A stretch of DNA of 64,000 nucleotides. Source: Leidyana gryllorum EB-2025a. Taxonomy: Eukaryota; Protista; Apicomplexa. The notes under the pieces were generated by a model. That model was given only the letters and a program-made list of their open reading frames with translations. It ran no database searches and had not been told where the DNA came from. How positions within the stretch are numbered: the stretch's first letter is position 1; every line of letters starts with the position of its first letter. Position numbers and translations under genes: made by a program. This document shows positions 42,499-64,000 of the stretch, in pieces. The DNA lies in the NCBI GenBank assembly GCA_048772705.1, contig JBLWGC010000035.1, forward strand, positions 186,001 to 250,000. The letters are read 5' to 3'.

Positions 42499-44134
42499 AT
42501 GAAGAATCTTATTTGTGTTTATGCTGCTGGTGCGGTGGCACTAGCTGGTGGGGCTGTGTCAGGCGCTATGGATACTGGTCGGTTCCACGATAACAACTCA
42601 ATTGCATGTCACTTTTCTTCCTGCAGTACCACCGATAGCAACTTGCAACAAAGGATACTCTGACAATGGGTCTGCTTGCATGATCGTGGAATTTGCCGAA
42701 CCACAAACCTTGTGCCCCAAAGGAGCAACTTTTGAGCATGGACAATGCATAGTTCTGAACAAATCAGCAGCGGAATACGTGTGTCCCGATGGGGCCATGT
42801 CAAAAGGCAAGAAATGCGAGGTCCTCGAGACTGCCGCTCCCACCTTGGAATGCGCCAAGGGCTTCACGGCTGCGAATGGCTCCTGTACGAGGACTGATTA
42901 CTATCCTGCGGAAAGAACGTGTCCGAAAGGATATAAACTGGACAAAGATGGTGGCTGCATCAGACATGTCAAGTGCGATGAGAAGGATTACGGTAAGTCA
43001 AGCATGTCGTTTAAATTGGTACCATTTTTGTGATCAGTTTGCCCCCCTGGCCTGGTCCAATCAGGCAAGCAATGTCTATTCTACGAGACTGTTCCTCCTG
43101 TGTTCACGTGCCCACATAACCACATCCTCCAAGGCGATCTGTGTGTGAAAGGAGAGAAAGGGGAGCCCAAGATTGTGTGTCCAAAGGGCTACAAGGTCGA
43201 AGGCAACATGTGCTCAATCGTTTCCAAGGTTGAGGCTGAGGTTTCCTGTCCCCAGGGTGTTCCAGCTGGTCACAAATGGTGCGAAGTGGAGGTGACCTCA
43301 GCTCCGACTATCACCTGTCCCAAAGGTATGGATTTGGTGGGCGCGCAATGTCAACGCCTCGAAACGGCGACTCCCCAGATCCATTGCGACAAAGGATTCA
43401 GCCATGTCAATGGCCGTTGCGTCAGTAGCGAGAAGATCCCAGCAGTGTATGGCTGTCCTGATGGGATCTTGGCTGATGGCAAGCATTGCATGATCAAAGA
43501 GCTTGTTCCTCCAACCAGAACTTGTCACGACGGATATGAGTACTCCAATGATGGGTGCCACAAGCAACACACCAAACCTGTCTCGATGGAATGCCCGAAA
43601 GGCTACAAAGTGGAAGGAAATACCTGTGTTGGATTCGTTAAAGAAAAAGCTGCTCAAGCAACCTGTCCTCACAGTACCGAGATCATTCCAGCTGAATTAT
43701 ACTGCAAGAAAGGAACCTTGGATCAGAATGGCATGTGTGTTTTGCTGTCTGGTACCGAGCCCGATGCTCGTTGCCCTAAAGACTACAAGTTCGACGGACT
43801 AGGTGGCTGTGTGCGAAAGGTGGGAGTACCAGCCCGTGCCGTGTGTCCTTCCGGCCGCGTCGAGAAACACGGATACTGTGAGGATCTGCTCGTTTCCTCT
43901 CCAGAGATCAGTTGCCCCAAGGGGTACATCCTCGGGTTGGATGGACAATGTTCTCGGAGTCAAGTCAAGCCTTATGTTCTTGCGTGCCCAGACGGCTACA
44001 AGCTTCACAACGGAGCTTGCATGCCGAAAGTTCACACATACTTCCTACAAGCCGGACCCCCCGTTGCTGCCACCAACGTGATAGCTGGGCCAATGATGGA
44101 TGGTGGGAAGCATGGAGGACATCATGGATACTAA
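42499..44134 (+). CDS. Oocyst wall protein (COWP/OWP-like Cys-repeat protein), signal peptide, 2 introns
   Basis: MKNLICVYAAGAVALA; repeated CPKGY....G..C units with Cys every 10-12 aa; His/Gly tail KHGGHHGY. Confidence 0.85.
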
Positions 44135-45000: not shown

Positions 45001-45430
45001 CTGCGGTCGAATTGAGTTCTTTTCACCCAACCTCTTGGGCTCAGGTGTTCGGCTTTCTCCGAATCGGTGAAGTCTGTAAAGTGAGATGGATCTCCAAGCA
45101 GACGTTAGCCCGCAGTGTGGGATATTCTGCGGAAAGCGCTGGATGACGAGTAAAACTCGCGAGAGAGCCGTATCGGAGCGAGAAACTAAAGCTGTTCAAT
45201 GTGTGGTGGACATTTGTGATCTCACCGCAGGATACTCTGCGGCGCCCCGTGAAAAGCTTCAAATCCCTCAAAGGACCCGTCGGGTGGTTCAGTCTCTATG
45301 ACATGGGGTATTTGGAGCGGATGTTGGAAGAGAGTCGTGGAAGATTTGGACGAACACGGCCCTCTGCGTTTATGCCACAAATGCCGTCTTCTGGCGAAAA
45401 CTCCAGAAATTGGTGCCGTCCGAGGGCTGA
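45001..45430 (+). pseudogene. Internally deleted F-box-array copy (no ATG, ~1.5 kb deletion)
   Basis: Promoter-like gcggtcgaattgagtt, then the 5' coding part to cagacgttagcc, joined directly to 3' coding cgcagtgtggga... Confidence 0.85.
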
Positions 45431-46069
45431 AAAGTTGAGAGCATTTCCGACAATGGGACAACAGGTGATCCCACCCAGCCGAAAGGCGGTCGAGGAGCTC
45501 GGCGTTGGAGTAGTGTCATTGGCGGCGCTGTCACCCTGGAATCAGTTTGGGTCTCAATCAAAGATATCGAGCGATTCTGAACGAACAGAGTTGTCGGTAT
45601 TCGAAGGCGGGCTCGCCGGAGTCGATTGATTTGTTACCGCGTCCAGTGTCGATAGCTTGGATCAGGACTGTGTGACAGGTGAGGTGATTCGGCGCTGCGA
45701 CAAGACTTGATCTGAAAACTCGTCCGTAGTGGGATGACGACTTGTAGGCGTAGTCCATTCGCCCTGTGTGAATCGTCCCCATCTAGCGGTATCACTAGTG
45801 GATTTTTAGTTCCCTTTTTGACCATCGTCTAATTCAATTAACGTAGAGCACACACGTGTCTGTGTCTCCTATGGACTGGCAGGGGACATACTGCCTAAGT
45901 GAGCTTAACTGGGGTGGTGAACGGGGGGCCCAACATCCAGATCGAGTAGCTAATCCCAATAGATCAAGACTGAAGGACTCTGGCATCCGAGCGAGATTGC
46001 TAACGGGGTCGGGTCGGGTCCAGTAGAATTTTAGATTGCGGTCGGATTGAGTTTTTTTGACCCTCAACA

Positions 46070-48046
46070 ATGCCCGACCTCCGCCCAATCTTTTGGGCTC
46101 AGGTTTTCGACTTTCTGCGAATCGGTGAAGTCTGTAAAGTGAGACGGGTCTCCAAGCAGACGTTAGCCGCTTTGAGGGATATATTCACATCCCGTCATTT
46201 AGTGATCGAAGTGAAAAGGGTTTATTTATTGCCGGGATTGGGTGACAGAGCTGTGAGAGAGAAAAAGAGATATCTATGTTCGCTGCCTCCGCGGCCCTGG
46301 AGCCTGGACCACCGAGATTGGGAAAGGTACACTTGGGACGACTTTGTTGACTCCGGTCCCTTTCCACTCACGAAGTGTCCCACAATTGCCGATGCCGATC
46401 AGTATGCGATCGACGAATGGAGACTCGATCCCGAGGGAGGCTTCGATCAGTGGTTGGAGAGAACGGGTCGGAAACCGGACACACTGAAGACGATAAGAAT
46501 CGTCGGACTTTCAGCAGCCGTGGAAGAGATTCTGAGCACTTTGAGCGAACGCCAATGTGAAGCCGTTGGAGACTTCTGTTCTGACCCCTTGAGAACTACG
46601 CCGATCACTTTGTTGACAAATACCGTGGAAGAGGGCGCGATGTGGTTCCCTTATTGTACTGTACCGTTCTTGTGCAATCCTGGGGAATGTTGGGTCGGCC
46701 CTCAATCGAAGGCGAGTTCACCGGGGTTGTTGAGTCCCGAGTTCCAGCGTCTACGCTCACATTGGGAAAGCACCGAAGGGGTTGGGGGAGTCGGCGATAT
46801 CGAAAATTTTGCTTCGCTGGCGTTCTCGCAGTTCTGTTACTCCACCGCCTTCTCTCCACAGAATCTTTTGAAACTTTGTCGATACTGTCGTGAGAGAGCC
46901 GGGACGGAAGCGTGTGAGATTGACCATTTGCGTTCTTCACAGGCGGGGGGTTATGTCTACACTCACACCCCGTGGCACCGCCTGAAGCCCTTCGACAAGT
47001 TGCCTCCTTGGCTCGGATGGGTCCCTGCGGTTAGAGCGGGACTGCTGGACGCCGAACCTTCCGAGGGCCCCCAGAAAGAGTTCAGATCGACGGATAGCGA
47101 CATCACTTCAGACTCCGACACCAATGACAAACGACATTCTCGGCACTGTAAGGGGACGTCACCGAGTTCGAAGCGGAGACGATTGTCTTTAGCCGAAATG
47201 GCGGAAACTCGATATTTCGTTGTGAAAACGCTGACGCCCGAAGAGCGCTGGCGACTTCAAAGCTACCTGAGATCGGCGGAAAATCTCGAATATCTCGAAG
47301 CCCGTTTCTGTGACTGGGCGATCATCGACCCGCAGGACTCCGCACTGTTACCCGAGAAATGCGTCCGAAGCTGTCGCATGAAGCATCTGCCCTCCAATAT
47401 GGAGAAGGCATTGCGGCTTAAGGAGGTAATCATAAAACACCAAATCTCTCAGATTGTGACGGATTTGGTGACACATCCGAGAGACATATTGTGGACTTAT
47501 TTGGTCCTCCACGAAGTCCAACTCCTCACCGGACGTTCTGTGAGATTGGGATTGCACGGAATAGCCTTCCTGGAGGAGCCCTGGACGACAGTTCTGCTGG
47601 AATTGGTGTCTGGACAGTGCCATCGGGAGACATTATACAAAGTGTTGCAGCACATCGGGGCGCCCATCAGCAACGATCTCTGGAAGTTGGAGGTGAAAAC
47701 TGCCGCAGTGTGGGAGACTCTGCGGGAAGCGGTGGATGAACAGTTACACCCGGGAGAGATAGTCGGCCGTATCGAGGGCGAGAAACTACAGCGGTTCAAT
47801 GAGTGGTGGACATCTTTGATCTCAGCGCAGGACACTCTGAGGCGCCCCGTGAAAAGCTTCAAATCCCTCAAAGGACCCGTCGGGTGGTTCAGTCTCTATG
47901 ATATGTGGTATTTGGAGCGGGTGTTGGCAGGTGACCACGACACATTGAAGTCGTGGAAGATTTGGACGGATACGCCCGTCTCCATTTATGCCACAACTGC
48001 CGTCTTCTGGCGAAGACTGCAGAAATTAGTGCCGTTCGAGGGCTGA
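46070..48046 (+). CDS. F-box-like family protein, copy A (658 aa)
   Basis: N-terminal MPDLRPIFWAQVFDFL..GEVCKVRRVSKQ fits the F-box pattern (LP...IF.FL...L.....VSK); NLS-like KRRR; intronless. Confidence 0.75.
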   Translation: MPDLRPIFWAQVFDFLRIGEVCKVRRVSKQTLAALRDIFTSRHLVIEVKRVYLLPGLGDRAVREKKRYLCSLPPRPWSLDHRDWERYTWDDFVDSGPFPLTKCPTIADADQYAIDEWRLDPEGGFDQWLERTGRKPDTLKTIRIVGLSAAVEEILSTLSERQCEAVGDFCSDPLRTTPITLLTNTVEEGAMWFPYCTVPFLCNPGECWVGPQSKASSPGLLSPEFQRLRSHWESTEGVGGVGDIENFASLAFSQFCYSTAFSPQNLLKLCRYCRERAGTEACEIDHLRSSQAGGYVYTHTPWHRLKPFDKLPPWLGWVPAVRAGLLDAEPSEGPQKEFRSTDSDITSDSDTNDKRHSRHCKGTSPSSKRRRLSLAEMAETRYFVVKTLTPEERWRLQSYLRSAENLEYLEARFCDWAIIDPQDSALLPEKCVRSCRMKHLPSNMEKALRLKEVIIKHQISQIVTDLVTHPRDILWTYLVLHEVQLLTGRSVRLGLHGIAFLEEPWTTVLLELVSGQCHRETLYKVLQHIGAPISNDLWKLEVKTAAVWETLREAVDEQLHPGEIVGRIEGEKLQRFNEWWTSLISAQDTLRRPVKSFKSLKGPVGWFSLYDMWYLERVLAGDHDTLKSWKIWTDTPVSIYATTAVFWRRLQKLVPFEG

Positions 48047-48512
48047 GGAGCTGAGAGCGGGTTTGACTGTACATAAACCAAACCCACAGTGAGTGAGAAG
48101 AGGTGTTGAGTGGTCCATATTGCAAGACATGGCACTCCCGGGCAGTTTTGGCGAGAACAGTGGTGTGCAGCGTTGCTGCTAACCGGAGATCGGCGGAAAA
48201 TCTGAGGGATATCCGAGTTGTTTCCGTGATGAAGTGAAGGTGAACTCGAGACATTGCGTAGACTTTCGCTCGCCTACCGAGTCCAAGTGCATTGAACCCT
48301 CGCTGAGCTCTTCGAAGTGGTACGTCACTTTGAGACATACAAAGATGGGCAACTCAAGGTGGAGTTGGGCTACCGTTTGGGCATCTACACACAAAAGGTG
48401 GTGATAAGTTACCTCAAGTTGCACCGTTGGTTTGATTACATCTTTCTTTTATTCGTTATACGGCGGTTTGCTATTGAATTTAGTTTGAGGAGACAATAAA
48501 CACGAACACATA

Positions 48513-49927
48513 TCAAGTTTTGATTGATTCTGGCTCACGATGTCTGGCTTGAGCTACCGCTTCCAACCAGCTATGATCGAAGTGCGGCACCAGTCCGAGA
48601 TGCAGCATCGTATGAGGATGGTTTTGCAAAGCCCTGACGAAGTTTTCTTTCAGATCCGAGTCCTCCGAGGGGGGAGGCAACTCGACTAGCCTGGCTTTCT
48701 TGGCGCTCAATTGAGAGGCACTCCGGGCTGGCTTTTTAGTACGTCCGTCCACGAACTCGCGCAAGTCCAACATCCGGCTGCGAAATGGATCGGATACGTG
48801 CAGGAAGAAGTTAGTGACTCTCGGGATAGGGAAAGTCAATTTGCCATCGCTGGTGGGATCAGCTGTGCTCAACTCATCCATTATCTCATACGCTGGCCCC
48901 GGTCGACCCTCAATCCGCATCCTGTCGAACAGCATGGCACCCTTGGCGAGATCCTCTTCAGAACAATATATGAGTTCAACGAGCGATTCCATCTCTGTTT
49001 TGATAATATTCTCCAGAGAGCGATTTCCAACGAGGAATCGCCCGGACAGAATAATGTGCTCGATCGGCCCCTGTGAATATTCTCGCAGCTGTGCCAGCAA
49101 CTTTCTTAGAAGATCTTCGAGCTTCGCGAACGCATCGTCAAGCCTGACTTTCCTGACTGCTCGGTCGCCGTCGCGAAGTACCAAGATTTTCGTCTCAGAA
49201 CCAAGACATGGCAAAATGTCACTTTCTGACGCTGAGGACACCGAGGATGGTAAAACTCGGTACCATCCAGGGTAAGCGTCCCGATCAATTTTCGTGGTGT
49301 CCCGGACCTGAAAACCGCCCGAATGCGCTTCGGCGATGACGGCGTCGCAGAAGTCACCTGTCCATCGAATGACACACGTAGTCGTCTTTTCGGCGAGTTG
49401 CGATAGATAGATCGAGTTCAACGTCACCCCGTCGTCTTCGTAGGCGGCGCCGCGGACGTCTGGTGTACTAGAGAAACCAGAGGCGCGCCTGTGAGATGCC
49501 CGATCTCCTGCGCTTTTTGCCTTTCTTCGAAGGTCAAAACTCGAGGGATGGTGAGAACAAGGCTCTCCCCGAAAGTCACGAGGAATGAGTTTCGACCGAA
49601 TTCAGTGGGCGGAAAGTCTCCTGGTTCCTGCGAGCAATTTTCGAGTGGGGCGCATCCTTGTGTTTGAGCGATAATGTTGGTTAACCGCAGAGCTGATAGC
49701 TCTCTGTCATTGTAGAGACAATCACCGTCTTGGTGGTGGAAGGCGAGTAAAGCAAAGCTCATTGGCTTCTCCACAGAGGCGGACGGAAAAGCGAAAGTCT
49801 GAGTGCTCAATTTGGGGGGTGATTTTGGCAATGAGGAGCGTGATTTGACGGTCAGCACTCGTTCGTATGTTGCAGTAATATTGGCAGCGTCAATCACTGC
49901 GGCCATAGTGCTCATCTCGTACGGCAT
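48513..49927 (-). pseudogene. Highly divergent HSP70-like (actin-fold) gene with one frameshift near 49448
   Basis: LVLTIPRVLTFEERQKAQEIGHLTGAPLVSLVHQTSAA ~ [46 protein letters not shown] and EEDLAKGAML ~ VVLVGG and DEAVAYGAA. Confidence 0.65.
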
Positions 49928-50189
49928 TGTTGTAAGATCTTCTTTGAAGTACTGTGCAGTAATGAACAGCGAAAGGTGCGCTTTTAATGTGTTAAGCTGG
50001 ATTGGCCGTGAAACAAAGGAAAACTCGCGCCCTCGTCCGCGAGTGTCCTCCACCTTGCGTGCGTCAGATCGTGCGATCCTCAGTCGCGTCGGTCACCAAG
50101 TGTGAATCACAATTGCCCGACCGCTCGTCGGCAACGAGCCGCGGGCTCTGGATCTATCACTGAGCGTTGCAATTCACCTCTGTTCGCTT

Positions 50190-50880
50190 CCGTGCTTTTC
50201 AACTGTGAACGGAGACGCTCCCGCTCGCTGACGAATACTTCCGGTGATCTTGCCTGCGATTGAGGTCAGCCCCAATTCCCAGGGATTGCGCAAGAGCGCT
50301 TCACTGCGATTGAAATACCACACAGCGCTCTCGCTCCCATTGTTTGCCATCACAGTGGTCCGCGGCGCACAACTCTACCCGTCATTGAAAGGAACGTCTC
50401 TAATGGCTTCACAATGGCGCTGATTTAGCGTTCTCAAGATCTCTCAAATGGCGATCTTCAGTGCAGTGTGTCAGATTTCTGAGGCGTTCTCTCCAACCAC
50501 TGATCGAAGCCTCCCTCGGGATCGAGTCTCCATTCGTCGATCGCATACTGATCGGCATCGGCAATTGTGGGACACTTCCTGAGTGGAAGGGGACCGGAGT
50601 CAACAAAGTCGTCCCAAGTGTACCTGTCCCAATCTTGGCGGTCCAGGCTGCAGGGCCGCGGAGGCAGCGAACATAGATATCTCTTTTTCTCTCTCACAGC
50701 TCTGTCACCCAATCCCGGCAATAAATAAACCCTTTTTACTTCGATCACCAAATGACGGGATGTGAATACATCCCTCAAAGCGGCTAACGTCTGCTTGGAG
50801 ACCCGTCTCACTTTACAGACTTCACCGATTCGCAGAAAGTCGAAAACCTGAGCCCATAAAATTGGGCGGAGGTCGGGCAT
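50190..50880 (-). pseudogene. 3'-truncated, decayed F-box-array copy
   Basis: First 140 codons nearly identical to copy A; degraded homology with stops continues to ~50190. Confidence 0.85.
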
Positions 50881-51513
50881 TGTTGAGGGCCAAAAAAATC
50901 CAATCCGACCCCAATCTAAAATTCTACTCGACCCGACCCGACCCCGTTAGCCTCGGATGCCAGAGTCCTTCAGTCTTGATCTATCAGGATTAGCTAGTCG
51001 ATCTGGATGTTGGGCCCCCCGTTCATCACCCCAGTTAAGCTCAGGTAGGCAGTATGTCTCCTGCCAGTGCATAGGAGACAGACACAGACACGTGTGTGCT
51101 CTACGTAAATTGAATTAGACGATGGTCAAAAAGGGAACTAAAAATCCACTACTGATACCGTTAGATGAGGAACATTCACACAGGGCGAATGACTACGCCT
51201 ACAAGTCGTCATCCCACTATGGACGAGTTTTCAGATCAAGTCTTGTCGCAGCGCCGAATCACCTCACCGCTAATTTCCTGATCGAAGGTATCGACACTGG
51301 ACGCGGCAACAGATCAATTGCCCTCCGGCGAACCCGCCTTGGAATACCGACAACTCTGTTCGTTCAGAATCGCTCGATATCTTTGATTAAAATCCAGACT
51401 GATTTGAGGGTGAGCGCTCCGGCAATGACACGACTCCAAAGCCGAGCTTTCCAACCGCCTTCCGGCTGGGTGGCATCACCTGTTGTTCCATCTTTGGAAA
51501 TGTTCTCAGCTTT

Positions 51514-53511
51514 TCAGCCCTCGAACGGCACTAATTTCTGCAGTCTTCGCCAGAAGACGGCAGTTGTGGCATAAATGGAGACGGGCGTATCCGTCCAAAT
51601 CTTCCACGACTTCAATGTGTCGTGGTCACCTGCCAACACCCGCTCCAAATACCACATATCATAGAGACTGAACCACCCGACGGGTCCTTTGAGGGATTTG
51701 AAGCTTTTCACGGGGCGCCTCAGAGTATCCTGCGCTGAGATCAGAGATGTCCACCACTCATTGAACCGCTGTAGTTTCTCGCCCTCGATACGGCCGACTA
51801 TCTCTCCCGAGTGTAACTGTTCATCCACTGCTTCCCGCAGAGTCTCCCACACTGCGGCAGTTTCCGCTTCCAAATTCCAGAGATCGTTGCTGATGGGCGC
51901 CCCGATGTGCTGCAACACTTTGTATAATGTCTCCCGATGGCACTGTCCAGACACCAATTCCAGCAGAACTGTCGTCCAGGGCTCCTCCAGGAAGGCTATT
52001 CCGTGCAATCCCAATCTCACAGAACGTCCGGTGAGGAGTTGGACTTCGTGGAGGACCAAATAAGTCCACAATATGTCTCTCGGATGTGTCACCAAATCCG
52101 TCACAATCTGAGAGATTTGGTGTTTTATGATTACCTCCTTAAGCCGCAATGCCGTCTCCATATTGGAGGGCAGATGCTTCATGCGACAGCTTCGGACGCA
52201 TTTCTCGGGTAACAGTGCGGAGTCCTGCGGGTCGATGATCGCCCAGTGACGGAAACGGGCTTCGAGATGTTCGAGATTTTCCGCCGATCTCAGGTAGCTT
52301 TGAAGTCGCCAGCGCTCTTTGGGCGTCAGCGTTTTCACCACAAAATATCGAGTTTCCGCCATTTCGGCTAAAGACAATCGTCTCCTCTTCGAAATCGTCG
52401 AAGTTCTCTTACAGTGCCCAAAATGTCGTTTGTCATCGGTTTCTGAGGCTGAAGTGCTGTCGCTATCCGTTGACATTGTTTTACTTCTGAACTCTTTCTG
52501 GGGGCCCTCGGAAGGTTCAGCGTCCAGCAGTCCCGCTCTAACCGCAGGGACCCATCCGAGCCAAGGAGGCAACTTGTCGAAGGGCTTCAGGCGGTGCCAC
52601 GGGGTGTGAGTGTAGACATAACCCCCCGCCTGTGAAGAACACAAATGGTCAATCTCACACGCTTCTGTCCCGGCTCTCTCACGACAGTATTGACAAAGTT
52701 TCAACAGATTCTGTGGAGAGAAGGCAGTGGAGTAACAGAACTGCGAGAACGCCAGCGAAGCAAAATTTTCGATATCGCCGACTCCCCCAACCCCTTCGGT
52801 ACTTTTCCAATGTGAGCGGAGACGCCGGAACTCGTCACTCAACAACCCCGGTGAACTCGCCTGCGATTGAGGGCCGTTCCAGAATTCCCCAGGATTGCGC
52901 AAGAACGGTACACTGCGATGGAAATACCACACAGCCCTCTCGCTCACTTTGTTTGCCCTCAAAGCGGTGTGAGGCGCACAATTCAAGACGTCAGGAGAAG
53001 GAGGAATGGTCTTAACGGCTTCACATTGGCGTTCGCTCAAAGTTCTCAGAATCTCTTCTACGGCCGCTGAAAGTCCGACGATTGTTATCGTCTTCAGTGT
53101 GTCCGGTTTCCGACTCGTTCTCTCCAACCACTGATCGAAGCCTCCCTCGGGATCGAGTCTCCATTCGTCGATCGCATACTGATCGGCATCGGCAATCGCG
53201 GGACACTTCCTGAGTGGAACGGGACGGTGCCAAACGAGGTCGTCCCAAGTGTACTTTTCCCATGCTTGGGGGATTAGGCTGCGGGGCCGCTGAGGCAGCG
53301 AACGTCTATAAATCTCCCTCTCTCTCACAGCTCTGTCACCCAATCCCGGCAATAAATCAACCCTTTTCACTTCGATCACCAAATGACGGGATGTGAATAT
53401 ATCCCTCAAAGCGGCTAACGTCTGCTTGGAGACCCGTCTCACTTTACAGACTTCACCGATTCGCAGAAAGTCGAAAACCTGAGCCCAAAAGATTGGGCGG
53501 AGGTCGGGCAT
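51514..53511 (-). CDS. F-box-like family protein, copy B (665 aa)
   Basis: Paralog of copy A. Confidence 0.75.
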   Translation of the reverse strand: MPDLRPIFWAQVFDFLRIGEVCKVRRVSKQTLAALRDIFTSRHLVIEVKRVDLLPGLGDRAVREREIYRRSLPQRPRSLIPQAWEKYTWDDLVWHRPVPLRKCPAIADADQYAIDEWRLDPEGGFDQWLERTSRKPDTLKTITIVGLSAAVEEILRTLSERQCEAVKTIPPSPDVLNCAPHTALRANKVSERAVWYFHRSVPFLRNPGEFWNGPQSQASSPGLLSDEFRRLRSHWKSTEGVGGVGDIENFASLAFSQFCYSTAFSPQNLLKLCQYCRERAGTEACEIDHLCSSQAGGYVYTHTPWHRLKPFDKLPPWLGWVPAVRAGLLDAEPSEGPQKEFRSKTMSTDSDSTSASETDDKRHFGHCKRTSTISKRRRLSLAEMAETRYFVVKTLTPKERWRLQSYLRSAENLEHLEARFRHWAIIDPQDSALLPEKCVRSCRMKHLPSNMETALRLKEVIIKHQISQIVTDLVTHPRDILWTYLVLHEVQLLTGRSVRLGLHGIAFLEEPWTTVLLELVSGQCHRETLYKVLQHIGAPISNDLWNLEAETAAVWETLREAVDEQLHSGEIVGRIEGEKLQRFNEWWTSLISAQDTLRRPVKSFKSLKGPVGWFSLYDMWYLERVLAGDHDTLKSWKIWTDTPVSIYATTAVFWRRLQKLVPFEG

Positions 53512-54158
53512 TGTTGAGGGTCAAAAAAACTCAATGCGACCGTAATCTAAAATTCTACTCAACCCGACCCCGTCACCGACCCCGTCAGCAATCTCACTCG
53601 GATGCCAGAGTCCTTCAGTCTTGATCTATCAGGATTAGCTACTCGATCTGGATGTTGGGCCCCCCGTTCACCCCCCCCCAGTTAAGCTCAGTTAAGCTGT
53701 ATGTCTCCTGCCGGTCCGTAGGAGACAGACAGACACGTGTGTGCTCTACGTAAATTGAATTAGACGATGGTCAAAAAGGAACTAAAAATCCACTACTGAT
53801 ACCGTTAGATGGGGAACATTCACACAGGGCGAATTGACTACGCCTACCAGTCGTCATCCCACTATGGATGAGTTTCCAGATCAAGTCTTGTCGCAGTGCC
53901 GAACCACCTCACCGCTAATTTCCTGATCGAAGGTATCGACACTGGACGCGGCAACAGATCAATTGCCCTCCGGCGAACCCGCCTTGGAATACCGACAACT
54001 CTGTTCGTTCAGAATCGCTCGATATCTTTGATTAAAATCCAGACTGATTTGAGGGTGAGCGCTCCGGCAATGACACGACTCCAAAGCCGAGCTTTCCAAC
54101 CGCCTTCCGGCTGGGTGGCATCACCTGTTGTTCCATGTTTGGAAATGTTCTCAGCTTT

Positions 54159-56150
54159 TCAGCCCTCGAACGGCACTAATTTCTGCAGTCTTCGCCAGAA
54201 GACGGCAGTTGTGGCATAAATGGAGACGGGCGTATCCGTCCAAATCTTCCACGACTTCAATGTGTCGTGGTCACCTGCCAACACCCGCTCCAAATACCAC
54301 ATATCATAGAGACTGAACCACCCGACGGGTCCTTTGAGGGATTTGAAGCTTTTCACGGGGCGCCTCAGAGTATCCTGCGCTGAGATCAAAGATGTCCACC
54401 ACTCATTGAACCGCTGTAGTTTCTCGCCCTCGATACGGCCGACTATCTCTCCCGGGTGTAACTGTTCATCCACTGCTTCCCGCAGAGTCTCCCACACTGC
54501 GGCAGTTTCCGCTTCCAAATTCCAGAGATCGTTGCTGATGGGCGCCCCGATGTGCTGCAACACTTTGTATAATGTCTCCCGATGGCACTGTCCAGACACC
54601 AATTCCAGCAGAACTGTCGTCCAGGGCTCCTCCAGGAAGGCTATTCCGTGCAATCCCAATCTCACAGAGCGTCCGGTGAGGAGTTGGACTTCGTGGAGGA
54701 CCAAATAAGTCCACAATATGTCTCTCGGATGTGTCACCAAATCCGTCACAATCTGAGAGATTTGGTGTTTTATGATTACCTCCTTAAGCCGCAATGCCGT
54801 CTCCATATTGGAGGGCAGATGCTTCATGCGACAGCTTCGGACGCATTTCTCGGGTAACAGTGCGGAGTCCTGCGGGTCGATGATCGCCCAGTGACGGAAA
54901 CGGGCTTCGAGATGTTCGAGATTTTCCGCCGATCTCAGGTAGCTTTGAAGTCGCCAGCGCTCTTTGGGCGTCAGCGTTTTCACAACAAAATATCGAGTTT
55001 CCGCCATTTCGGCTAAAGACAATCGTCTCCTCTTCGAAATCGTCGAAGTTCTCTTACAGTGCCCAAAATGTCGTTTGTCATCGGTTTCTGAGGCTGAAGT
55101 GCTGTCGCTATCCGTTGACATTGTTTTACTTCTGAACTCTTTCTGGGGGCCCTCGGAAGGTTCGGCGTCCAGCAGTCCCGCTCTAACCGCAGGGACCCAT
55201 CCGAGCCAAGGAGGCAACTTGTCGAAGGGCTTCAGGCGGTGCCACGGGGTGTGAGTGTAAACATAACCCCCCGCCTGTGAAGAACACAAATGGTCAATCT
55301 CACACGCTTCCGTCCCGGCTCTCTCACGACAGTATTGACAAAGTTTCAACAGATTCTGTGGAGAGAAGGCAGTGGAGTAACAGAACCGCGAGAACGGCCG
55401 CGAAGCAAAAACTTCAAGATCGCCGACTCCCCCAACCCCTTCGGTACTTTTCCAATGTGAGCGGAGACGCCGGAACTCGTCACTCAACAACCCCGGTGAA
55501 CTCGCCTGCGATTGAGGGCCGTTCCAGAATTCCCCAGGATTGCGCAAGAACGGTACAGTACAATGAGAAAACCACATAGCGTTCTCTCTCACGGTATTTG
55601 TCAACAAAGTGATCGGCGGCGCATTTCTGAAGCTGGCAGGAGGAATGCTTCTAACGGCTTCACATTGGCGTTCGCTCAAAGTTCTCAGAATCTCTTCTAC
55701 GGCCGCTGAAAGTCCGACGATTGTTATCGTCTTCAGTGTGTCCGGTTTCCGACTCGTTCTCTCCAACCACTGATTGAAGCCTCCCTCGGGATCGAGTCTC
55801 CATTCGTCGATCGCATACTGATCGGCATCGGCAATCGCGGGACACTTCCTGAGTGGAACGGGACGGTGCCAAACGAGGTCGTCCCAAGTGTACTTTTCCC
55901 ATACTTGGGGGATTAGGCTGCGGGGCCGCTGAGGCAGCGAACGTCTATAAATCTCCCTCTCTCTCACAGCTCTGTCACCCAATGCCGGCAATAAATGAAC
56001 CCTTTTCACTTCGATCACTAAATGTCGGGATGTGAATATATCCCTCAAAGCGGCTAACGTCTGCTTGGAGACCCGTCTCACTTTACAGACTTCACCGATT
56101 CGCAGAAAGTCGAAAACCTGAGCCCAAAAGATTGGGCGGAGGTCGGGCAT
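54159..56150 (-). CDS. F-box-like family protein, copy C (663 aa)
   Basis: Paralog; ATG at 56150 by homology. Confidence 0.75.
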   Translation of the reverse strand: MPDLRPIFWAQVFDFLRIGEVCKVRRVSKQTLAALRDIFTSRHLVIEVKRVHLLPALGDRAVREREIYRRSLPQRPRSLIPQVWEKYTWDDLVWHRPVPLRKCPAIADADQYAIDEWRLDPEGGFNQWLERTSRKPDTLKTITIVGLSAAVEEILRTLSERQCEAVRSIPPASFRNAPPITLLTNTVRENAMWFSHCTVPFLRNPGEFWNGPQSQASSPGLLSDEFRRLRSHWKSTEGVGGVGDLEVFASRPFSRFCYSTAFSPQNLLKLCQYCRERAGTEACEIDHLCSSQAGGYVYTHTPWHRLKPFDKLPPWLGWVPAVRAGLLDAEPSEGPQKEFRSKTMSTDSDSTSASETDDKRHFGHCKRTSTISKRRRLSLAEMAETRYFVVKTLTPKERWRLQSYLRSAENLEHLEARFRHWAIIDPQDSALLPEKCVRSCRMKHLPSNMETALRLKEVIIKHQISQIVTDLVTHPRDILWTYLVLHEVQLLTGRSVRLGLHGIAFLEEPWTTVLLELVSGQCHRETLYKVLQHIGAPISNDLWNLEAETAAVWETLREAVDEQLHPGEIVGRIEGEKLQRFNEWWTSLISAQDTLRRPVKSFKSLKGPVGWFSLYDMWYLERVLAGDHDTLKSWKIWTDTPVSIYATTAVFWRRLQKLVPFEG

Positions 56151-56783
56151 TGTTGAGGGCCAAAAAATCCAATCCGACCGCAATCTAAAATTCTACTCGA
56201 CCCGACCCCGTCAGCAATATCACTCGGATGCCAGAGTCCTTCAGTCTTGATCTATCAGGATTAGCTACTCGATCTGGATGTTGGGCCCCCCGTTCACCCC
56301 CCAGTTAAGCTCAGTTAAGCTGTATGTCTCCTGCCGGTCCGTAGGAGACAGACACAGACACGTGTGTGCTCTACGTAAATTGAATTAGACGATGGTCAAA
56401 AAGGAACTAAAAATCCACTACTGATACCGTTAGATGAGGAACATTCACACAGGGCGAATTGACTACGCCTACAACTCGTCATCCCACTATGGACGAGTTT
56501 TCAGAGCAAGTTTTGTCGCAGTGCCGAACCACCTCACCTCCCACGTCCTGATCGAAGGCATCGACACTGGACGCGGCAACAGATCAATTGCCCTCCGGCG
56601 AACCCGCCTTGGAATACCGACAACTCTGTTCGTTCAGAATCGCTCGATATCTTTGATTAAAATCCAGACTGATTTGAGGGTGAGCGCTCCGGCAATGACA
56701 CGACTCCAAAGCCGAGCTTTCCAACCGCCTTCCGGCTGGGTGGCATCACCTGTTGTTCCATCTTTGGAAATGTTCTCAGCTTT

Positions 56784-58781
56784 TCAGCCCTCGAACGGCA
56801 CTAATTTCTGCAGTCTTCGCCAGAAGACGGCAGTTGTGGCATAAATGGAGACGGGCGTATCCGTCCAAATCTTCCACGACTTCAATGTGTCGTGGTCACC
56901 TGCCAACACCCGCTCCAAATACCACATATCATAGAGACTGAACCACCCGACGGGTCCTTTGAGGGATTTGAAGCTTTTCACGGGGCGCCTCAGAGTATCC
57001 TGCGCTGAGATCAAAGATGTCCACCACTCATTGAACAGCTGTAGTTTCTCGCCCTCGATACGGCCGACTATCTCTCCCGAGTGTAACTGTTCATCCACCG
57101 CTTCCCGCAGAGTCTCCCACACTGCGGCAGTTTCCGCTTCCAAATTCCAGAGATCGTTGCTGATTGGCGCCCCAATGTGCTGCAGCACTTTGGATAATGT
57201 CTCCCGATGGCACTGTCCAGACACCAATTCCAGCAGAACTGTCGTCCAGGGCTCCTCCAGGAAGGCTATTCCGTGCAATCCCAATCTCACAGAACGTCCG
57301 GTGAGGAGTTGGACTTCGTGGAGGACCAAATAAGTCCACAATATGTCTCTCGGATGTGTCACCAAATCCGTCACAATCTGAGAGATTTGGTGTTTTATGA
57401 TTACCTCCTTAAGCCGCAATGCCGTCTCCATGTTGGAGGGCAGATGCTTCATGCGACAGCTTCGGACGCATTTCTCGGGTAACAGTGCGGAGTCCTGCGG
57501 GTCGATGATCGCCCAGTGACGGAAACGGGCTTCGAGGTATTCGACATTTTCCGCCGATCTCAGGTAGCTTTGAAGTCGCCAGCGCTCTTTGGGCGTCAGC
57601 GTCTTCACAACAAAATATCGAGTTTCCGCCATTTCGGCTAAAGACAATCGTCTCCTCTTCGAAATCGTCGAAGTTCTCTTACAGCGCCCAAAATGTCGTT
57701 TGTCATCGGTTTCTGAGGCTGAAGTGATGTCGCTATCCGTTGACATTGTTTTACTTCTGAACTCTTTCTGGGGGCCCTCGGAAGGTTCAGCGTCCAGCAG
57801 TCCCGCTCTAACCGCAGGGACCCATCCGAGCCAAGGAGGCAACTTGTCGAAGGGCTTCAGGCGGTGCCACGGGGTGTGAGTGTAAACATAACCCCCCGCC
57901 TGTGAAGAACACAAATGGTCAATCTCACACGCTTCCGTCCCGGCTCTCTCACGACAGTATTGACAAAGTTTCAACAGATTCTGTGGAGAGAAGGCAGTGG
58001 AGTAACAGAACCGCGAGAACGGCCGCGAAGCAAAAACTTCAAGATCGCCGACTCCCCCAACCCCTTCGGTACTTTTCCAATGTGAGCGGAGACGCCGGAA
58101 CTCGTCACTCAACAACCCCGGTGAACTCGCCTGCGATTGAGGGCCGTTCCAGAATTCCCCAGGATTGCGCAAGAACGGTACACTGCGATGGAAATACCAC
58201 ACAGCGCTCTCGCTCACTTTGTTTGCCCTCAAAGCGGTGTGCGGCGCACAATTCAAGACGTCAGGAGAAGGAGGAATGCTTCTAACGGCTTCACATTGGC
58301 GTTCGCTCAAAGTTCTCAGAATCTCTTCTACGGCCGCTGAAAGTCCGACGATTGTTATCGTCTTCAGTGTGTCCGGTTTCCGACTCGTTCTCTCCAACCA
58401 CTGATCGAAGCCTCCCTCGGGATCGAGTCTCCATTCGTCGATCGCATACTGATCGGCATCGGCAATCGCGGGACACTTCCTGAGTGGAACGGGACGGTGC
58501 CAAACGAGGTCGTCCCAAGTGTACTTTTCCCATGCTTGGGGGATTAGGCTGCGGGGCCGCTGAGGCAGCGAACGTCTATAAATCTCCCTCTCTCTCACAG
58601 CTCTGTCACCCAATCCCGGCAATAAATCAACCCTTTTCACTTCGATCACCAAATGACGGGATGTGAATATATCCCTCAAAGCGGCTAACGTCTGCTTGGA
58701 GACCCGTCTCACTTTACAGACTTCACCGATTCGCAGAAAGTCGAAAACCTGAGCCCAAAAGATTGGGCGGAGGTCGGGCAT
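56784..58781 (-). CDS. F-box-like family protein, copy D (665 aa)
   Basis: Paralog. Confidence 0.75.
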   Translation of the reverse strand: MPDLRPIFWAQVFDFLRIGEVCKVRRVSKQTLAALRDIFTSRHLVIEVKRVDLLPGLGDRAVREREIYRRSLPQRPRSLIPQAWEKYTWDDLVWHRPVPLRKCPAIADADQYAIDEWRLDPEGGFDQWLERTSRKPDTLKTITIVGLSAAVEEILRTLSERQCEAVRSIPPSPDVLNCAPHTALRANKVSESAVWYFHRSVPFLRNPGEFWNGPQSQASSPGLLSDEFRRLRSHWKSTEGVGGVGDLEVFASRPFSRFCYSTAFSPQNLLKLCQYCRERAGTEACEIDHLCSSQAGGYVYTHTPWHRLKPFDKLPPWLGWVPAVRAGLLDAEPSEGPQKEFRSKTMSTDSDITSASETDDKRHFGRCKRTSTISKRRRLSLAEMAETRYFVVKTLTPKERWRLQSYLRSAENVEYLEARFRHWAIIDPQDSALLPEKCVRSCRMKHLPSNMETALRLKEVIIKHQISQIVTDLVTHPRDILWTYLVLHEVQLLTGRSVRLGLHGIAFLEEPWTTVLLELVSGQCHRETLSKVLQHIGAPISNDLWNLEAETAAVWETLREAVDEQLHSGEIVGRIEGEKLQLFNEWWTSLISAQDTLRRPVKSFKSLKGPVGWFSLYDMWYLERVLAGDHDTLKSWKIWTDTPVSIYATTAVFWRRLQKLVPFEG

Positions 58782-59431
58782 TGTTGAGGGTCAAAAAAAC
58801 TCAATGCGACCGTAATCTAAAATTCTACTCGACCCGACCCCGTCACCGACCCCGTCAGCAATCTCACTCGGATGCCAGAGTCCTTCAGTCTTGATCTATC
58901 AGGATTAGCTACTCGATCTGGATGTTGGGCCCCCCGTTCACCCCCCCCCAGTTAAGCTCAGTTAAGCTGTATGTCTCCTGCCGGTCCGTAGGAGACAGAC
59001 ACAGACACGTGTGTGCTCTACGTAAATTGAATTAGACGATGGTCAAAAAGGGAACTAAAAATCCACTACTGATACCGTTAGATGAGGAACATTCACACAG
59101 GGCGAATTGAATACGCCTACCAGTCGTCATCCCACTATGGATGAGTTTTCAGATCAAGTCTTGTCGCAGTGCCGAACCACCTCACCTCCCACGTCCTGAT
59201 CGAAGGCATCGACACTGGACGCGGCAACAGATCAATTGCCCTCCGGCGAGCCCGCCTTCGAATACCGACAACTCTGTTCGTTCAGAATCGCTCGATATCT
59301 TTGATTAAAATGCAGACTGATTTGAGGGTGAGCGCTCCGGCAATGACACGACTCCAAAGCCGAGCTTTCCAACCGCCTTCCGGCTGGGTGGCATCACCTG
59401 TTGTTCCATCTTTGGAAATGTTCTCAGCTCC

Positions 59432-60162
59432 TCAGCCCTCGAACGCCACTAATTTCTGCAGTCTTCGCCAGAAGACGGCAGTTGTGGCATAAATGGAGAC
59501 GGGCGTATCCGTCCAAATCTTCCACGACTCTAACGTGTCGTGGTCACCTGCCAACACCCGCTCCAAATACCACATATCATAGAGACTGAACCACCCGACG
59601 GGTCCTTTAAGGGATTTGAAGCTTTTCACGGGGCGCCTCAGAGTATCCTGCGCTGAGATCAAAGATGTCCACCACTCATTGAACCGCTGTAGTTTCTCGC
59701 CCTCGATACGGCCGACTATCTCTCCCGGGTGTAACCGTTCATCCACCGCTTCCCGCAGAGTCTCCCACACTGCGGCAGTTTTCGCTTCCAAATTCCAGAG
59801 ATCGTTGCTGATGGGCGCCCCGATGTGCTGCAACACTTTGTATAATGTCTCCCGATGGCACTGTCCAGACACCAATTCCAGCAGAACTGTCGTCCAGGGC
59901 TCCTCCAGGAAGGCTATTCCGTGCAATCCCAATCTCACAGAACGTCCGGTGAGGAGTTGGACTTCGTGGAGGACCAAATAAGTCCACAATATGTCTCTCG
60001 GATGTGTCACCAAATCCGTCACAATCTGAGAGATTTGGTGTTTTATGATTACTTCCTTAAATCGCAATGCCGTCTCCATGTTGGAGGGCAGATGCTTCAT
60101 GCGACAGCTTCGGACGCATTTCTCGGGTAACAGTGCGGAGTCCTGCGGGTCGATGATCGCCC
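59432..60162 (-). pseudogene. F-box-array copy E, 3' portion only, interrupted by retrotransposon
   Basis: Identity to copies B-D stops abruptly at ...gatgatcgccc|tgagcc. Confidence 0.9.
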
Positions 60163-60341
60163 TGAGCCGTGTGAATGGCTCACGTTAACCTCCGAGGCTG
60201 CGGGGGTTCCTATAGGCTTACTCAACATAGGCGTGTCGCTCATTAGTTATCAACTAGCTCTGATCTATTTACAAAAGACTAAAAGGATGTCGGCGACATA
60301 ACATTGCCTTCGCGTTTTGCCTCACTGCGCCTGACCGCTCA
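60163..60341 (-). repeat. 3' LTR (179 bp), termini TGAGC...GCTCA
   Basis: TG..CA ends with 5 bp inverted repeat; bounded by the PPT on one side and the host-gene junction on the other. Confidence 0.8.
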
Positions 60342-60342
60342 G

Positions 60343-60352
60343 CTCCCCTCCC
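60343..60352 (-). other. Polypurine tract GGGAGGGGAG
   Basis: Between the pol stop (60363) and the LTR start. Confidence 0.8.
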
Positions 60353-60362
60353 GCCGCGTCCC

Positions 60363-63300
60363 TCAATCGATTACCACTCTAGAGGGCGCGCGGCGCTTCT
60401 TAGCGGGCGGGCCGTCCGCCGTGGGTCGTAGCGGATCTTCCACCCGCGCTCGCCCCTGCAAGACGACATCCTCCACAGTAACGTCCTTGGGCCAGCCCCG
60501 ATTCAAAGGCCTCTCTCGTAGCCACTGCCCTTCGTTCTTCTCCACGTGGTCGACGGTAAGTTGGAAGAGTGACCCGGGGATAGCAGCGGGCAGTGGGGTA
60601 AGCTTCCGGAGCGCTACTGTACGCAGCTCCTCGGCCCGGCCCAGGTGCGCCACTGTGGCACTACCGTCCCGGACTCGCACCACGCGACACGGCAGGGAGT
60701 GGCGGAAGCTAGACGACGTGGGGCCGTGGAGATCTGCTTGCAGCATAGCGTCTCGGGCTTCCTTGGACGCCTCGGTCAGGACCCAGTCACCTACTGTTAT
60801 CGCCTTGGCGGGTTGCGCCTCCAGCGCCCGCGTTCGCTGCGCCAGCACCCACCCTACGTACCCTTGCAACCGGTGGGCGCGCTGTTGCGCGACTCTAGCC
60901 TCGTTGTTGTCTTGTCGCAGCGCCTGCCAACCGGCGATCGCCGGCTCGAACCCCATCAACATGTAGAACGGCGACCGCGCCGTAGCTACATGGGGCGTGG
61001 CGTTATAGGCCATCACTAGCGACGCGACCAGAGTCTCCAGCGGCTCCGCGGTGCCCTCGGCTACCAGAGCGTCAACGCCCCGCTTGAGAAACTCGTGCGA
61101 GGCCTCGTTGATCCCGTTGCCTTGCGGGTAATGAGCCGTGGTGAAGTAGTGGGTACACCCCATTTCGATGTCCACAAGCTCGCGAAAGGCAGCCCCCTGG
61201 AACACCGATCCTCTGTCGGTAAGTATCGCGGTAGGGACCTGGAAGGTATAGAGCCACTTCTCCCGGAGGGCCTTGGCCACGCTCTTGGCCGTTGGGGGCT
61301 CCCACAGTACCTCCACTACCATGAATCGCGAGTAATGATCCACGATCACCACCCACCAGTAAGCTTCCCCTTTCCATCGTCTCGGCCCGACGAGGTCGAT
61401 ACTGACTATCTCGCACGGCCACGGCTTAGTCAACATGCCCACGAGGGCCCGCTTCGTCGGCTTACGGAGTCGCTGACACACGATGCACGCCCTGACATAC
61501 TCTGCGGCCTGCTCGGACATCCCTGGCCAGTAGACCCACTGCCGCATAAGCCTCAGCATCCGGTTTACCGCCACGTGCATCCCGGCCTTCCCGCAGTGGA
61601 ACCAGTATAAGAGGGTCTCTCGCCAGTCTGGTGGAATCCACAGCTTCGTACTCCCTATTTTGTAATACAGGCCTTCCGGCCCTTTTCTTATCAGATTCTC
61701 CTCTCCCGGAGGGATCGATTTAGACGCCTCTCGTAACTGAGGGATCGACGGGAGCAACGGGGGTGGCCAGATCTGCGCGACTGCCTCAGCCTCGAAGAGC
61801 GGCACGCAATACTCTTCCATATCTATCCCGCCTTCGTCATCTGCTGGGTGCCGCGACAAGTAATCGGCCACGACGTTGTCCTCCCCTTCTAGGTAGATGA
61901 ACTCCAAGTCGTACTGCTGTAAGAACAGCGACCAGCGCAGGAACTTGCCATCCTGCATCGCGTTGAAATACTTCAGCGCGGCATGGTCCGTAATTACGAA
62001 GGTCTTGCGGGTGCGGATGTAGTCGTGGAACTTCTTTACAGCCCACACCACTGCGAATGCTTCCTGTTCCGACGTGCTCCACCTGGTCTCCGCGTCAGTC
62101 AACTTCTTACTAGCATATTCCAGGGTCACCAGCGTCCCCTCTTGGGCTTGCATCAGCACCGCCCCGACCCCTTTCTTACAGGCATCCGTGTTAATCACGA
62201 ACAGCCCAGGGCCCTTAGGATAGGCCAGTAAGGCCGCTTCGGCGATTCCCTTCTTAACTAGCGCGAACGCTCGTTGCTGCTCGGGACCCCACTCGAAGGG
62301 GTGACTCTGCTTGGTGAGAGACGTCAGTGGCTCCGCGATCGTGCTGTAATCCTGCACGAACTTTCTCAAGTAGCTACTCATCCCCAAGAACTCCCGTAGC
62401 TCTCTCAAATTCGTGGGTGCAGGTGCGTTTACGATCCCCTGCACCTTCTTCGGACTCGGCCTGATGCCTTCCCGACTTACTCTAAACCCTAGCATGTTGA
62501 CCTCTCGCCTGTACAGCTCCGTCTTCTTGAGCTTGAAGAAGAACCCTGCTTCCCTCGCCGCCGCCAGTACCTCTCGCAGCGTCGCGTCGTGTTCCTCCTT
62601 CGTGTCACCCCAAATGGTGATATCGTCAATGTACCTCGTCGCGCAACGGACGGAACCGAAGGCTAGATCTAACGCGCGTTGACACTCGCTCGGAGAATTA
62701 CGCACTCCGAACGGGAGCACCGTGTACTCGTAAGTGCCAGCGTGGGTGATCATCGCGGTGTACGGCATACTCCCCTCCTCTAGCCTTACGTTCCAGAAAC
62801 CGTTGGCGCAATCTAGAGCCGAGTACCACTCGTGCCCGGCTGCCAATTGGCACAGGTCCCACACGTGAGGCAGGGGGTACGCGTCCGGTACCATCTGCGC
62901 GTTGAGAGGGCGGTAATCTACTACAATCCGCCACTCCCCAGTCTTCTTCTTTACAAATAAGGGGCTTGCACCCCACGGGCTCTTACTCGGCCTGATTACA
63001 CCAGCCTTGAGCATACTCTGGAGTTGCTTATCCAACTCCTCCTTCAACTCCGCGGTCAGCGGTCTCAACCTTGCCCTATACGGCTTCCCGTAAACCTCGA
63101 AGCTGGCGGTGCTGACCTTAACTCGCCCCGGCACCGGGTCCAGCCAGGCATCTTTATACTCCCACCAGATGTCCCACAGCTCAGAGACCCTCTCCGGACT
63201 CAAGTGACTCGTGATCGCATGAAACGTAGCTCGAGCCTCGGCTTTCTTTTCTTCGTCGGTAGCCCCTATCTCGTAGCCTGTAACGACGTCTTTAGCCGCA

Positions 63301-63995
63301 TTGGCTCGCTTCTCTTCCTCCGTAAGCTCAACCATCAGCGCCTCGACCCTCCTAGGCAGTAACTGGCCCTCGAGAGGGTCCAGCAACAGCCCGCTGGTCT
63401 TCAACGCGTCCATACCTACTAGTAACTGGTCATGATGCGTCTCGACTACCCAAAACGATTGCTCAAAGCCAACCCCTCCAATCTCCAACTTTACAGGTTC
63501 GAGCTTCCGGCCCCTCGCGGTACCCAGCCCGGCGAAGTTTACCGTATCACCGGTAGCCCTTAACCCGAACTTCTTACGCAACGAAGGCCCGCAGACACTG
63601 AAAGCCGCTCCTGTGTCGACTATCGCCTCGAACTCTACTCCGTTGATCTTTACGGGCATCCGGAAAGCCTTTCCGAACCCGTTCGGCGAGCAGCGATACA
63701 CCTCTCTCTCGCCAAGGTAATCTTTGAGCAGGCGGCAGGTCTCCTCGAGGACTCCTTCATCGTCGGTCTCGCTCGACGAGTCCTCGGCCTCGCACACCTT
63801 GGCGTCCGCTTTCTCCTCTTCCGCTGCTTTCTTCTTGGCGGCCTCCTTGAGCTCTCGGTAATGCTTCGCTTTACGCTCTCTAACTTTCGCTGCTCGACTT
63901 CGCAAGATCTCCAACAGCTCTTCCGCGCTTACGATCTTCTCTTCGGCTGAATACGGCTCCTTAGACTGAAGCACGTGACCTGCCCGGGTCTCCAT
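60363..63995 (-). CDS. pol: Gypsy Pol polyprotein (may extend upstream of the window)
   Basis: IVDTGA protease; LPFG and YIDD RT; TDAC RNase H; H..H..CIVC and D-D-E integrase; C-terminal PPAKKRR. Confidence 0.95.
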   Translation of the reverse strand: METRAGHVLQSKEPYSAEEKIVSAEELLEILRSRAAKVRERKAKHYRELKEAAKKKAAEEEKADAKVCEAEDSSSETDDEGVLEETCRLLKDYLGEREVYRCSPNGFGKAFRMPVKINGVEFEAIVDTGAAFSVCGPSLRKKFGLRATGDTVNFAGLGTARGRKLEPVKLEIGGVGFEQSFWVVETHHDQLLVGMDALKTSGLLLDPLEGQLLPRRVEALMVELTEEEKRANAAKDVVTGYEIGATDEEKKAEARATFHAITSHLSPERVSELWDIWWEYKDAWLDPVPGRVKVSTASFEVYGKPYRARLRPLTAELKEELDKQLQSMLKAGVIRPSKSPWGASPLFVKKKTGEWRIVVDYRPLNAQMVPDAYPLPHVWDLCQLAAGHEWYSALDCANGFWNVRLEEGSMPYTAMITHAGTYEYTVLPFGVRNSPSECQRALDLAFGSVRCATRYIDDITIWGDTKEEHDATLREVLAAAREAGFFFKLKKTELYRREVNMLGFRVSREGIRPSPKKVQGIVNAPAPTNLRELREFLGMSSYLRKFVQDYSTIAEPLTSLTKQSHPFEWGPEQQRAFALVKKGIAEAALLAYPKGPGLFVINTDACKKGVGAVLMQAQEGTLVTLEYASKKLTDAETRWSTSEQEAFAVVWAVKKFHDYIRTRKTFVITDHAALKYFNAMQDGKFLRWSLFLQQYDLEFIYLEGEDNVVADYLSRHPADDEGGIDMEEYCVPLFEAEAVAQIWPPPLLPSIPQLREASKSIPPGEENLIRKGPEGLYYKIGSTKLWIPPDWRETLLYWFHCGKAGMHVAVNRMLRLMRQWVYWPGMSEQAAEYVRACIVCQRLRKPTKRALVGMLTKPWPCEIVSIDLVGPRRWKGEAYWWVVIVDHYSRFMVVEVLWEPPTAKSVAKALREKWLYTFQVPTAILTDRGSVFQGAAFRELVDIEMGCTHYFTTAHYPQGNGINEASHEFLKRGVDALVAEGTAEPLETLVASLVMAYNATPHVATARSPFYMLMGFEPAIAGWQALRQDNNEARVAQQRAHRLQGYVGWVLAQRTRALEAQPAKAITVGDWVLTEASKEARDAMLQADLHGPTSSSFRHSLPCRVVRVRDGSATVAHLGRAEELRTVALRKLTPLPAAIPGSLFQLTVDHVEKNEGQWLRERPLNRGWPKDVTVEDVVLQGRARVEDPLRPTADGPPAKKRRAPSRVVID

Positions 63996-64000
63996 TACAC

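Follow-up and report, generated by a model that had tools for sequence, protein, structure and literature searches.

The DNA analysed here (the window, 64,000 nucleotides) comprises positions 186001-250000 of contig JBLWGC010000035.1 (C35) of the apicomplexan Leidyana gryllorum EB-2025a and is part of a 15.5-Mb assembly in 237 contigs. From position 45001 onwards it carries an array of repeated genes whose predicted proteins begin with an F-box. These genes belong to a real lineage-specific family with an unrecognised domain; the palindromic system proposed in a first-pass annotation, in which the copies converge on an HSP70-like gene, is not supported.

Self-comparison of the window detected seven copies as repeats, at the places and on the strands given in that annotation (Table 1). 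A common spacer of 600-650 bp was present in both arms, as described, and stands upstream of every intact copy from A to D; the 2.1 kb centre consists of unique sequence. Copy E, previously listed as truncated, is instead a gene split by a Ty3/gypsy insertion, with its remainder beyond the window. The array runs past the window end, and position 60162 is not its limit: the 5' part of E is followed by intact copy F and then by fragment G. The whole array comprises nine copies, five of them intact (A, B, C, D and F), three fragments, and E.

Table 1. Coordinates of array features within the window (aa, amino acids; ORF, open reading frame; LTR, long terminal repeat; NBD, nucleotide-binding domain)
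Feature	Position	Strand	Remarks
Dead copy	45026-45430	+	F-box start fused to 3' end, internal deletion of ~1.5 kb; no ATG; frameshifts
Spacer upstream of A	45431-46069	+	89-91% identity with - arm spacers
Copy A	46070-48046	+	Intact ORF, 658 aa; 89% protein identity to B, most divergent intact copy
Degenerate centre gene, probably Hsp70-NBD-derived	48513-49927	-	~470 codons in two frames, break near 49446
Copy T, pseudogene	50187-50880	-	5' ~720 nt retained; codon 140 is followed by a stop
B-T spacer	50881-51513	-
Copy B	51514-53511	-	Intact ORF, 665 aa
Candidate in-frame intron in B	52711-52791	-	81 nt, stop-free, weak GT donor, at the family's conserved intron position
C-B spacer	53512-54158	-
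Copy C	54159-56150	-	Intact ORF, 663 aa from ATG
D-C spacer	56151-56783	-
Copy D	56784-58781	-	Intact ORF, 665 aa
E-D spacer	58782-59431	-
Copy E, 3' part	59432-60162	-	731 nt; 5' part (1272 nt) past the retroelement at C35:251093-252364, beyond the window
Ty3/gypsy LTR retrotransposon in E	60163-64000	-	LTR 60163-60341; ends at C35:251092; outside the repeat unit

In copy B the F-box occupies aa 4-43. It is followed by two variable blocks (aa ~52-100 and ~165-260), a low-complexity stretch (aa ~335-378) in which the previously reported KRRR motif was located at residue 375, and a conserved beta/alpha domain (aa ~385-640). Residues 1-43 were modelled with a predicted local distance difference test score (pLDDT) of 79-93 as three helices (residues 6-13, 18-24 and 29-37), giving a three-helix F-box fold near the N-terminus. 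The model overlaid the F-box of Skp2 (1fs1_C) over 41/41 residues at a root-mean-square deviation of 2.2, and that of Fbl10 (6bva_E) over 39/40 residues at 2.1, a likeness that Foldseek missed. PF00646 was matched by 13 of 18 aligned family members (E up to 1), and the Pfam F-box cut-off was passed by dozens of loci of the family (for example L020, 21.1 bits against 20.5). A family profile, in which the window sequences were included, recovered the window N-termini at E about 1e-20. On the structural model, the N-terminus is predicted to be an F-box. The genome contains one Skp1 gene (C230:901.5 kb).

In the paralogues the F-box is followed by leucine-rich repeat (LRR)-like repeats, all below cut-off, with 5/18 aligned members matching PF24758 (best E 0.003). 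A regular LRR solenoid was not seen in the window copies, whose C-terminal model gave no LRR match. Their second half was modelled with a predicted template modelling (TM) score of 0.74 and a pLDDT of ~90 in the core as alternating strands and helices, the confidently modelled C-terminal part covering ~280 residues. This part, noted earlier as an unrecognised domain, proved to have no match in Pfam and no clear one in the PDB, BFVD or Atlas: structure searches gave a best Z of 6.2 (barrels), Foldseek searches of the PDB and BFVD gave no E below 0.001, and Atlas matches had TM scores of 0.38 or less. A TIM-barrel or radical-SAM enzyme was considered and rejected, the resemblance at these values being of a generic beta/alpha kind. 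The model slightly exceeds the size from which a single domain may be overlooked, and null matches do not prove a new fold.

For spliced models, alignment, searches and folding were carried out on each exon separately. Each of the 16 split-ORF paralogues examined had its phase-2 GT donor at the same homologous site, as did three loci from other datasets. The stop of the paralogue N-terminal ORF sits within the splice donor; in most cases removal of a 38-67 nt intron puts the sequence back in frame. Stop-codon read-through was rejected for the paralogues on account of this stop position and of introns of 38, 55 and 67 nt that restore the frame. The window genes stay open across the donor position, where 81 nt running from GT to AG, in frame and free of stops, could form an intron; its donor is weak and displaced by one base. 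Given this stretch and the conserved intron of the paralogues, the earlier description of the window genes as intronless is unproven.

The family comprises ~100 loci. Second exons were found at 98 loci in 36 clusters on 24 contigs, and the exon profiles gave 106 and 108 matches; a search of the genome with one sequence gave ~55 distant paralogues, fewer than the profiles. Clusters are mostly head-to-tail, many members lie near contig ends, and the notion of a single special locus gives way to that of a family spread over about 36 clusters genome-wide. A profile search of 1.84 billion representatives returned only 14 proteins, and the ten that were looked up all came from Logan assemblies. Traced outside relatives came from three datasets (ERR10900103, ERR10900105 and SRR28734874). 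SRR28734874 also has the closest homologue (77%) of a neighbouring transporter, and one contig among the other datasets carries an apparent alveolin fragment, so these datasets probably represent related gregarines. Two of their members (L042:1628-4261 and L043:70-4440) have long low-complexity N-terminal extensions ahead of the F-box. Members from the other datasets interleaved with those of this genome in a tree made by a quick method, which implies that the family is older than these species; the tree has long branches and its deep nodes are unreliable. No family homologue was found in annotated apicomplexans, and word-index searches were blank for both queries, the full protein and the centre ORF, and uninformative on longer or shorter kin. 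A literature search found no F-box expansion reported for gregarines.

Divergence was calculated among the five intact copies. Codons 1-48 had zero replacement changes, and from codon 400 to the end the proportions of silent (pS) and replacement (pN) differences between A and B were 0.022 and 0.013, far below spacer divergence, even between arms. In codons 49-265 the corresponding values were 0.17 and 0.14 for A-B and 0.061 and 0.073 for B-C, with a between-arm pN of 0.14-0.15. Coding indels kept the frame in 4/4 cases, those in spacers in 5/15. Among 780 pairs of informative sites 368 were incompatible, and these were clustered in tracts (p=5e-5). Copy C carries a ~70-nt tract common with A on the opposite arm, and the pseudogene T carries at nt 151-300 the allele of A (97% to A against 81% to B/C). 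From the mosaic tracts and incompatible sites, recombination homogenises both ends of the gene and shuffles the divergent middle blocks between copies and arms. This pattern is that expected of a family of recognition proteins; a pN/pS near 1 is not proof of positive selection. The earlier claim of rapid evolution is supported; clear positive selection is not shown, pN/pS being about 1 in the variable part.

The insert in copy E has identical 179-bp LTRs bounded by TG..CA, a 5-bp target duplication and domains in the order protease, reverse transcriptase, RNase H, integrase, and was classified accordingly as Ty3/gypsy. Seven or more elements carry this LTR with 100% identity, with full-length copies on C230, C220, C202, C47, C2 and C7 and in the window; this element family has therefore been recently active, and the insertion into E appears to be very recent. 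On C47 one copy lies ~0.7 kb upstream of another array of the F-box family. The repeat unit itself was rejected as a transposon or viral gene: it has no such domain, no BFVD match with E below 0.001, and a spliceosomal-type intron conserved family-wide.

The arms form an imperfect, lopsided inverted duplication. Self-comparison showed symmetric pairing of 45110-46778 with 51857-50187, a tract of ~1.67 kb at 85% identity with 3.4 kb unpaired between, and the + arm extends for ~3 kb against ~20 kb for the - arm. Spacers of the two arms are 89-91% identical, those within the - arm 94-99%. The array was earlier called palindromic; its arms are unequal in length and only 85-91% identical, not symmetric and near-identical. 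These lengths and identities are consistent with tandem growth of one arm after an older event, either an inversion or an inverted duplication. Broken members include the innermost copy, the outermost copies and the centre gene. Opposed copies occur on other contigs too, for example as a convergent pair on C51. The spacer of the window subfamily was found at full length nowhere else. Its middle (50975-51240) was matched at 71-79% by C98:19047-19278 and C43:159757-159982 and, over 41 nt, by a stretch of C230 lying 200 bp from an LTR; it is possibly an old dispersed element.

We consider it likely that the family is a birth-and-death family of substrate adaptors of an SCF (Skp1-cullin-F-box) ubiquitin ligase, probably serving intracellular surveillance, and that the locus is a young tandem amplification from a single member of this old family, which would be confined to gregarines. 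As read from the array, a resident Hsp70-derived gene would have been flanked when an inverted duplication placed copies on both sides, and the - arm would then have been lengthened by unequal crossing-over. The F-box and C-terminus are kept nearly identical by recombination or gene conversion while the middle blocks shuffle, and copies are lost through deletion, frameshift and retrotransposon insertion, as the sequence shows. Residues 4-43 would most likely engage the parasite's own single Skp1 inside the parasite cell, the variable middle and the beta/alpha C-terminal domain recruiting substrates to the ligase. By analogy with nematodes and plants, the likeliest driver would be surveillance of fast-changing foreign or selfish proteins, such as those of viruses and of the active Ty3/gypsy family, mixed with drift. 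The roles in defence, incompatibility or drive put forward in the first-pass annotation stand as hypotheses. The convergent layout and the centre gene would be by-products.

Several observations weigh against this explanation. The F-box-like motif reported earlier is upheld by the paralogues that pass Pfam and by the overlay on Skp2, but in the window copies themselves the motif is below cut-off: PF12937 was matched at 13.2 bits (E 0.077; Pfam cut-off 24.3), the usual Pro and Trp are missing, and the structural Z is only 2.2, the motif being small. The LRR stretch is mostly replaced in the window subfamily by poorly modelled sequence, in the tree this subfamily stands alone on a very long branch, and the pN/pS of ~0.7-1.4 in the variable part is compatible with neutral drift.

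A mostly non-adaptive history, in which a real F-box gene owes its copy number and variable blocks to drift or relaxed constraint and the extra copies are redundant or silent, is considered unlikely. Some observations speak for it. Four of the nine copies are broken, silent and replacement divergence climb together in the variable blocks (the A-B values above), and the variable region is poorly modelled. Against it, five full ORFs persist through blocks that are 20-30% divergent with only frame-preserving indels, the F-box is invariant, and the family has been kept and expanded in several species.

A more elaborate form of the surveillance idea was judged improbable. It would make the family, in gregarines of this lineage, an intracellular immune or self/non-self system in which ~100 F-box adaptors bind substrates by a new fold and gain diversity from shuffled blocks. 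Hsp70-like proteins that have lost catalysis, expanded to an equal degree, would serve as co-receptors or decoys, and the present locus, with two related dead Hsp70-like genes bracketing it, would be one module.

Slightly less probable again is a linked system in which the layout matters and F-box genes cooperate with degenerate Hsp70-like genes; these would act as co-factors, targets or decoys of the adaptors, or the two kinds would make up a poison-antidote or incompatibility pair. The two ORFs at the centre read as one gene. A sister gene at C35:256400-257812 (L032:400-1812) is intact, encodes 470 aa and starts ~200 bp past fragment G, head-to-head with the far end of the array. Centre gene and sister are collinear (z about 9-10), and neither has another clear relative in the genome. 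A reading of the centre as two separate Hsp70 fragments was rejected, both frames being collinear with the sister and no convincing intron bridging the break. The HSP70-like label given earlier goes back to a similarity to the DnaK NBD (PF00012) that is weak and collinear, with a shuffle z of 2.6 for the centre gene (X placed at the break) and 3.9 for the sister, covering lobe IA and the phosphate-2 and adenosine regions; on the other side, neither gene had a match in Pfam or the PDB, HHalign gave a probability of 0.3%, and the Atlas lead stood at rank 10 with a score of 0.88. The nucleotide-binding and catalytic motifs are eroded and a substrate-binding domain was not recognised, so the centre gene lacks the PF00012 match, intact phosphate-1, phosphate-2 and adenosine motifs, and substrate-binding domain of an Hsp70 chaperone. 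From its weak collinear similarity and eroded motifs, derivation from Hsp70 is likely but not established.

The linkage of centre gene and sister to the same array favours cooperation, as do another Hsp70-like gene on C92, head-to-head with a family member, and the precedent of a Caenorhabditis F-box speciation gene (PMC12951971). Some 30 Hsp70 loci were counted in the genome, many of them degenerate and in arrays, including those on C104, C2, C230 and C92. By Pfam there are ~15 separate Hsp70 sites; 2 of them have a family member within 15 kb, where ~7% of the genome is as close. This is not a clear enrichment, and the test is a weak one, since Pfam misses the genes that are most eroded. Relative orientation varies from case to case. 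The idea of a system defined by convergence on the HSP70-like gene is not supported, given the frameshift in that gene, the old, imperfect arms and the lack of a detected partner in most of the 36 clusters.

Secreted effectors acting on the ubiquitin system of the invertebrate host, like the F-box proteins of Chlamydia or Legionella, would suit a large family in a parasite genome with many members near contig ends, and have a bacterial precedent (PMC4209131). We regard this as very improbable. As stated in the first-pass annotation there is no signal peptide: the N-terminus is not hydrophobic, the F-box begins at residue 4, and neither a signal peptide nor a membrane segment was found (hydropathy over 19 residues peaks at 1.12, with 0.86 at the N-terminus). 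The B and D ORFs have a stop immediately upstream with no splice acceptor nearby, and there is no evident export route for proteins lacking a signal peptide.

The proposal given least credence, that the inverted arms supply double-stranded RNA silencing the family or that the layout is kept for arm-to-arm repair, draws on tracts common to both arms and on at least two Piwi-domain genes in the genome, and has against it arms only 85-91% identical around a loop of 2-3 kb and on a spacer that has no unusual structure (z 1.14), no Rfam match and no noncoding RNA found in it. Clear Piwi-domain genes lie at C121:41751-42719 and C121:208175-209125 and a weak one at C43:~451 kb; one of these is ~1.5 kb from an F-box family member.

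The preferred explanation, a family of SCF adaptors evolving by birth and death, can be set beside known expansions. Lineage-specific F-box expansions are known in Caenorhabditis (PMC8665587), including the fbxn family with Cni-neib-1 (PMC12951971). As there, the present family combines a constrained N-terminal F-box, tandem duplication and gene loss with variable substrate-side regions and uncharacterised C-terminal domains. It differs in being apicomplexan, in having a conserved far C-terminus and a variable middle, and in that positive selection is not shown; none of the library families showed a sequence or fold link to its C-terminal domain. Plant F-box/LRR/FBD proteins (PF24758, LRR_At5g56370) and FBXL proteins (Skp2, FBXL2) resemble the paralogues in having LRR-like repeats after the F-box. 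Unlike in those proteins, the LRR matches are below cut-off and lost in the window subfamily, and the C-terminus matches neither FBD nor solved LRR structures. Toxoplasma gondii has 18 predicted F-box proteins, 4 of them common with Plasmodium (PMC6685633). These are likewise apicomplexan SCF adaptors, many with unrecognised C-terminal domains; the present family has about five times as many genes, all of one family and in tandem arrays. The lineage restriction proposed earlier is supported, with relatives traced in three other datasets, and so is a copy number far above that of Toxoplasma.

Apicomplexans are known for having few F-box genes. About 100 copies of a single family in a 15.5-Mb gregarine genome, their C-terminal domain unmatched in the databases, suggest that F-box expansions of the conflict type, seen in nematodes and plants, have arisen in Apicomplexa as well. 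The near-identical copies, which differ chiefly in two blocks, indicate where specificity would reside and make the cluster the most useful natural experiment in the family; the convergent geometry in itself contributes little.

The protein encoded at 42548-44134 of the window has cysteine-rich repeats, begins with a hydrophobic stretch and ends in a part rich in His and Gly. It has no significant Pfam match and resembles oocyst wall proteins. Two neighbouring genes fit a gregarine as the source organism. The neighbouring myosin is closest to apicomplexan myosin A, and the nearest named relatives of the neighbouring transporter are from Gregarina niphandrodes and Gregarina sp., at ~42% identity.

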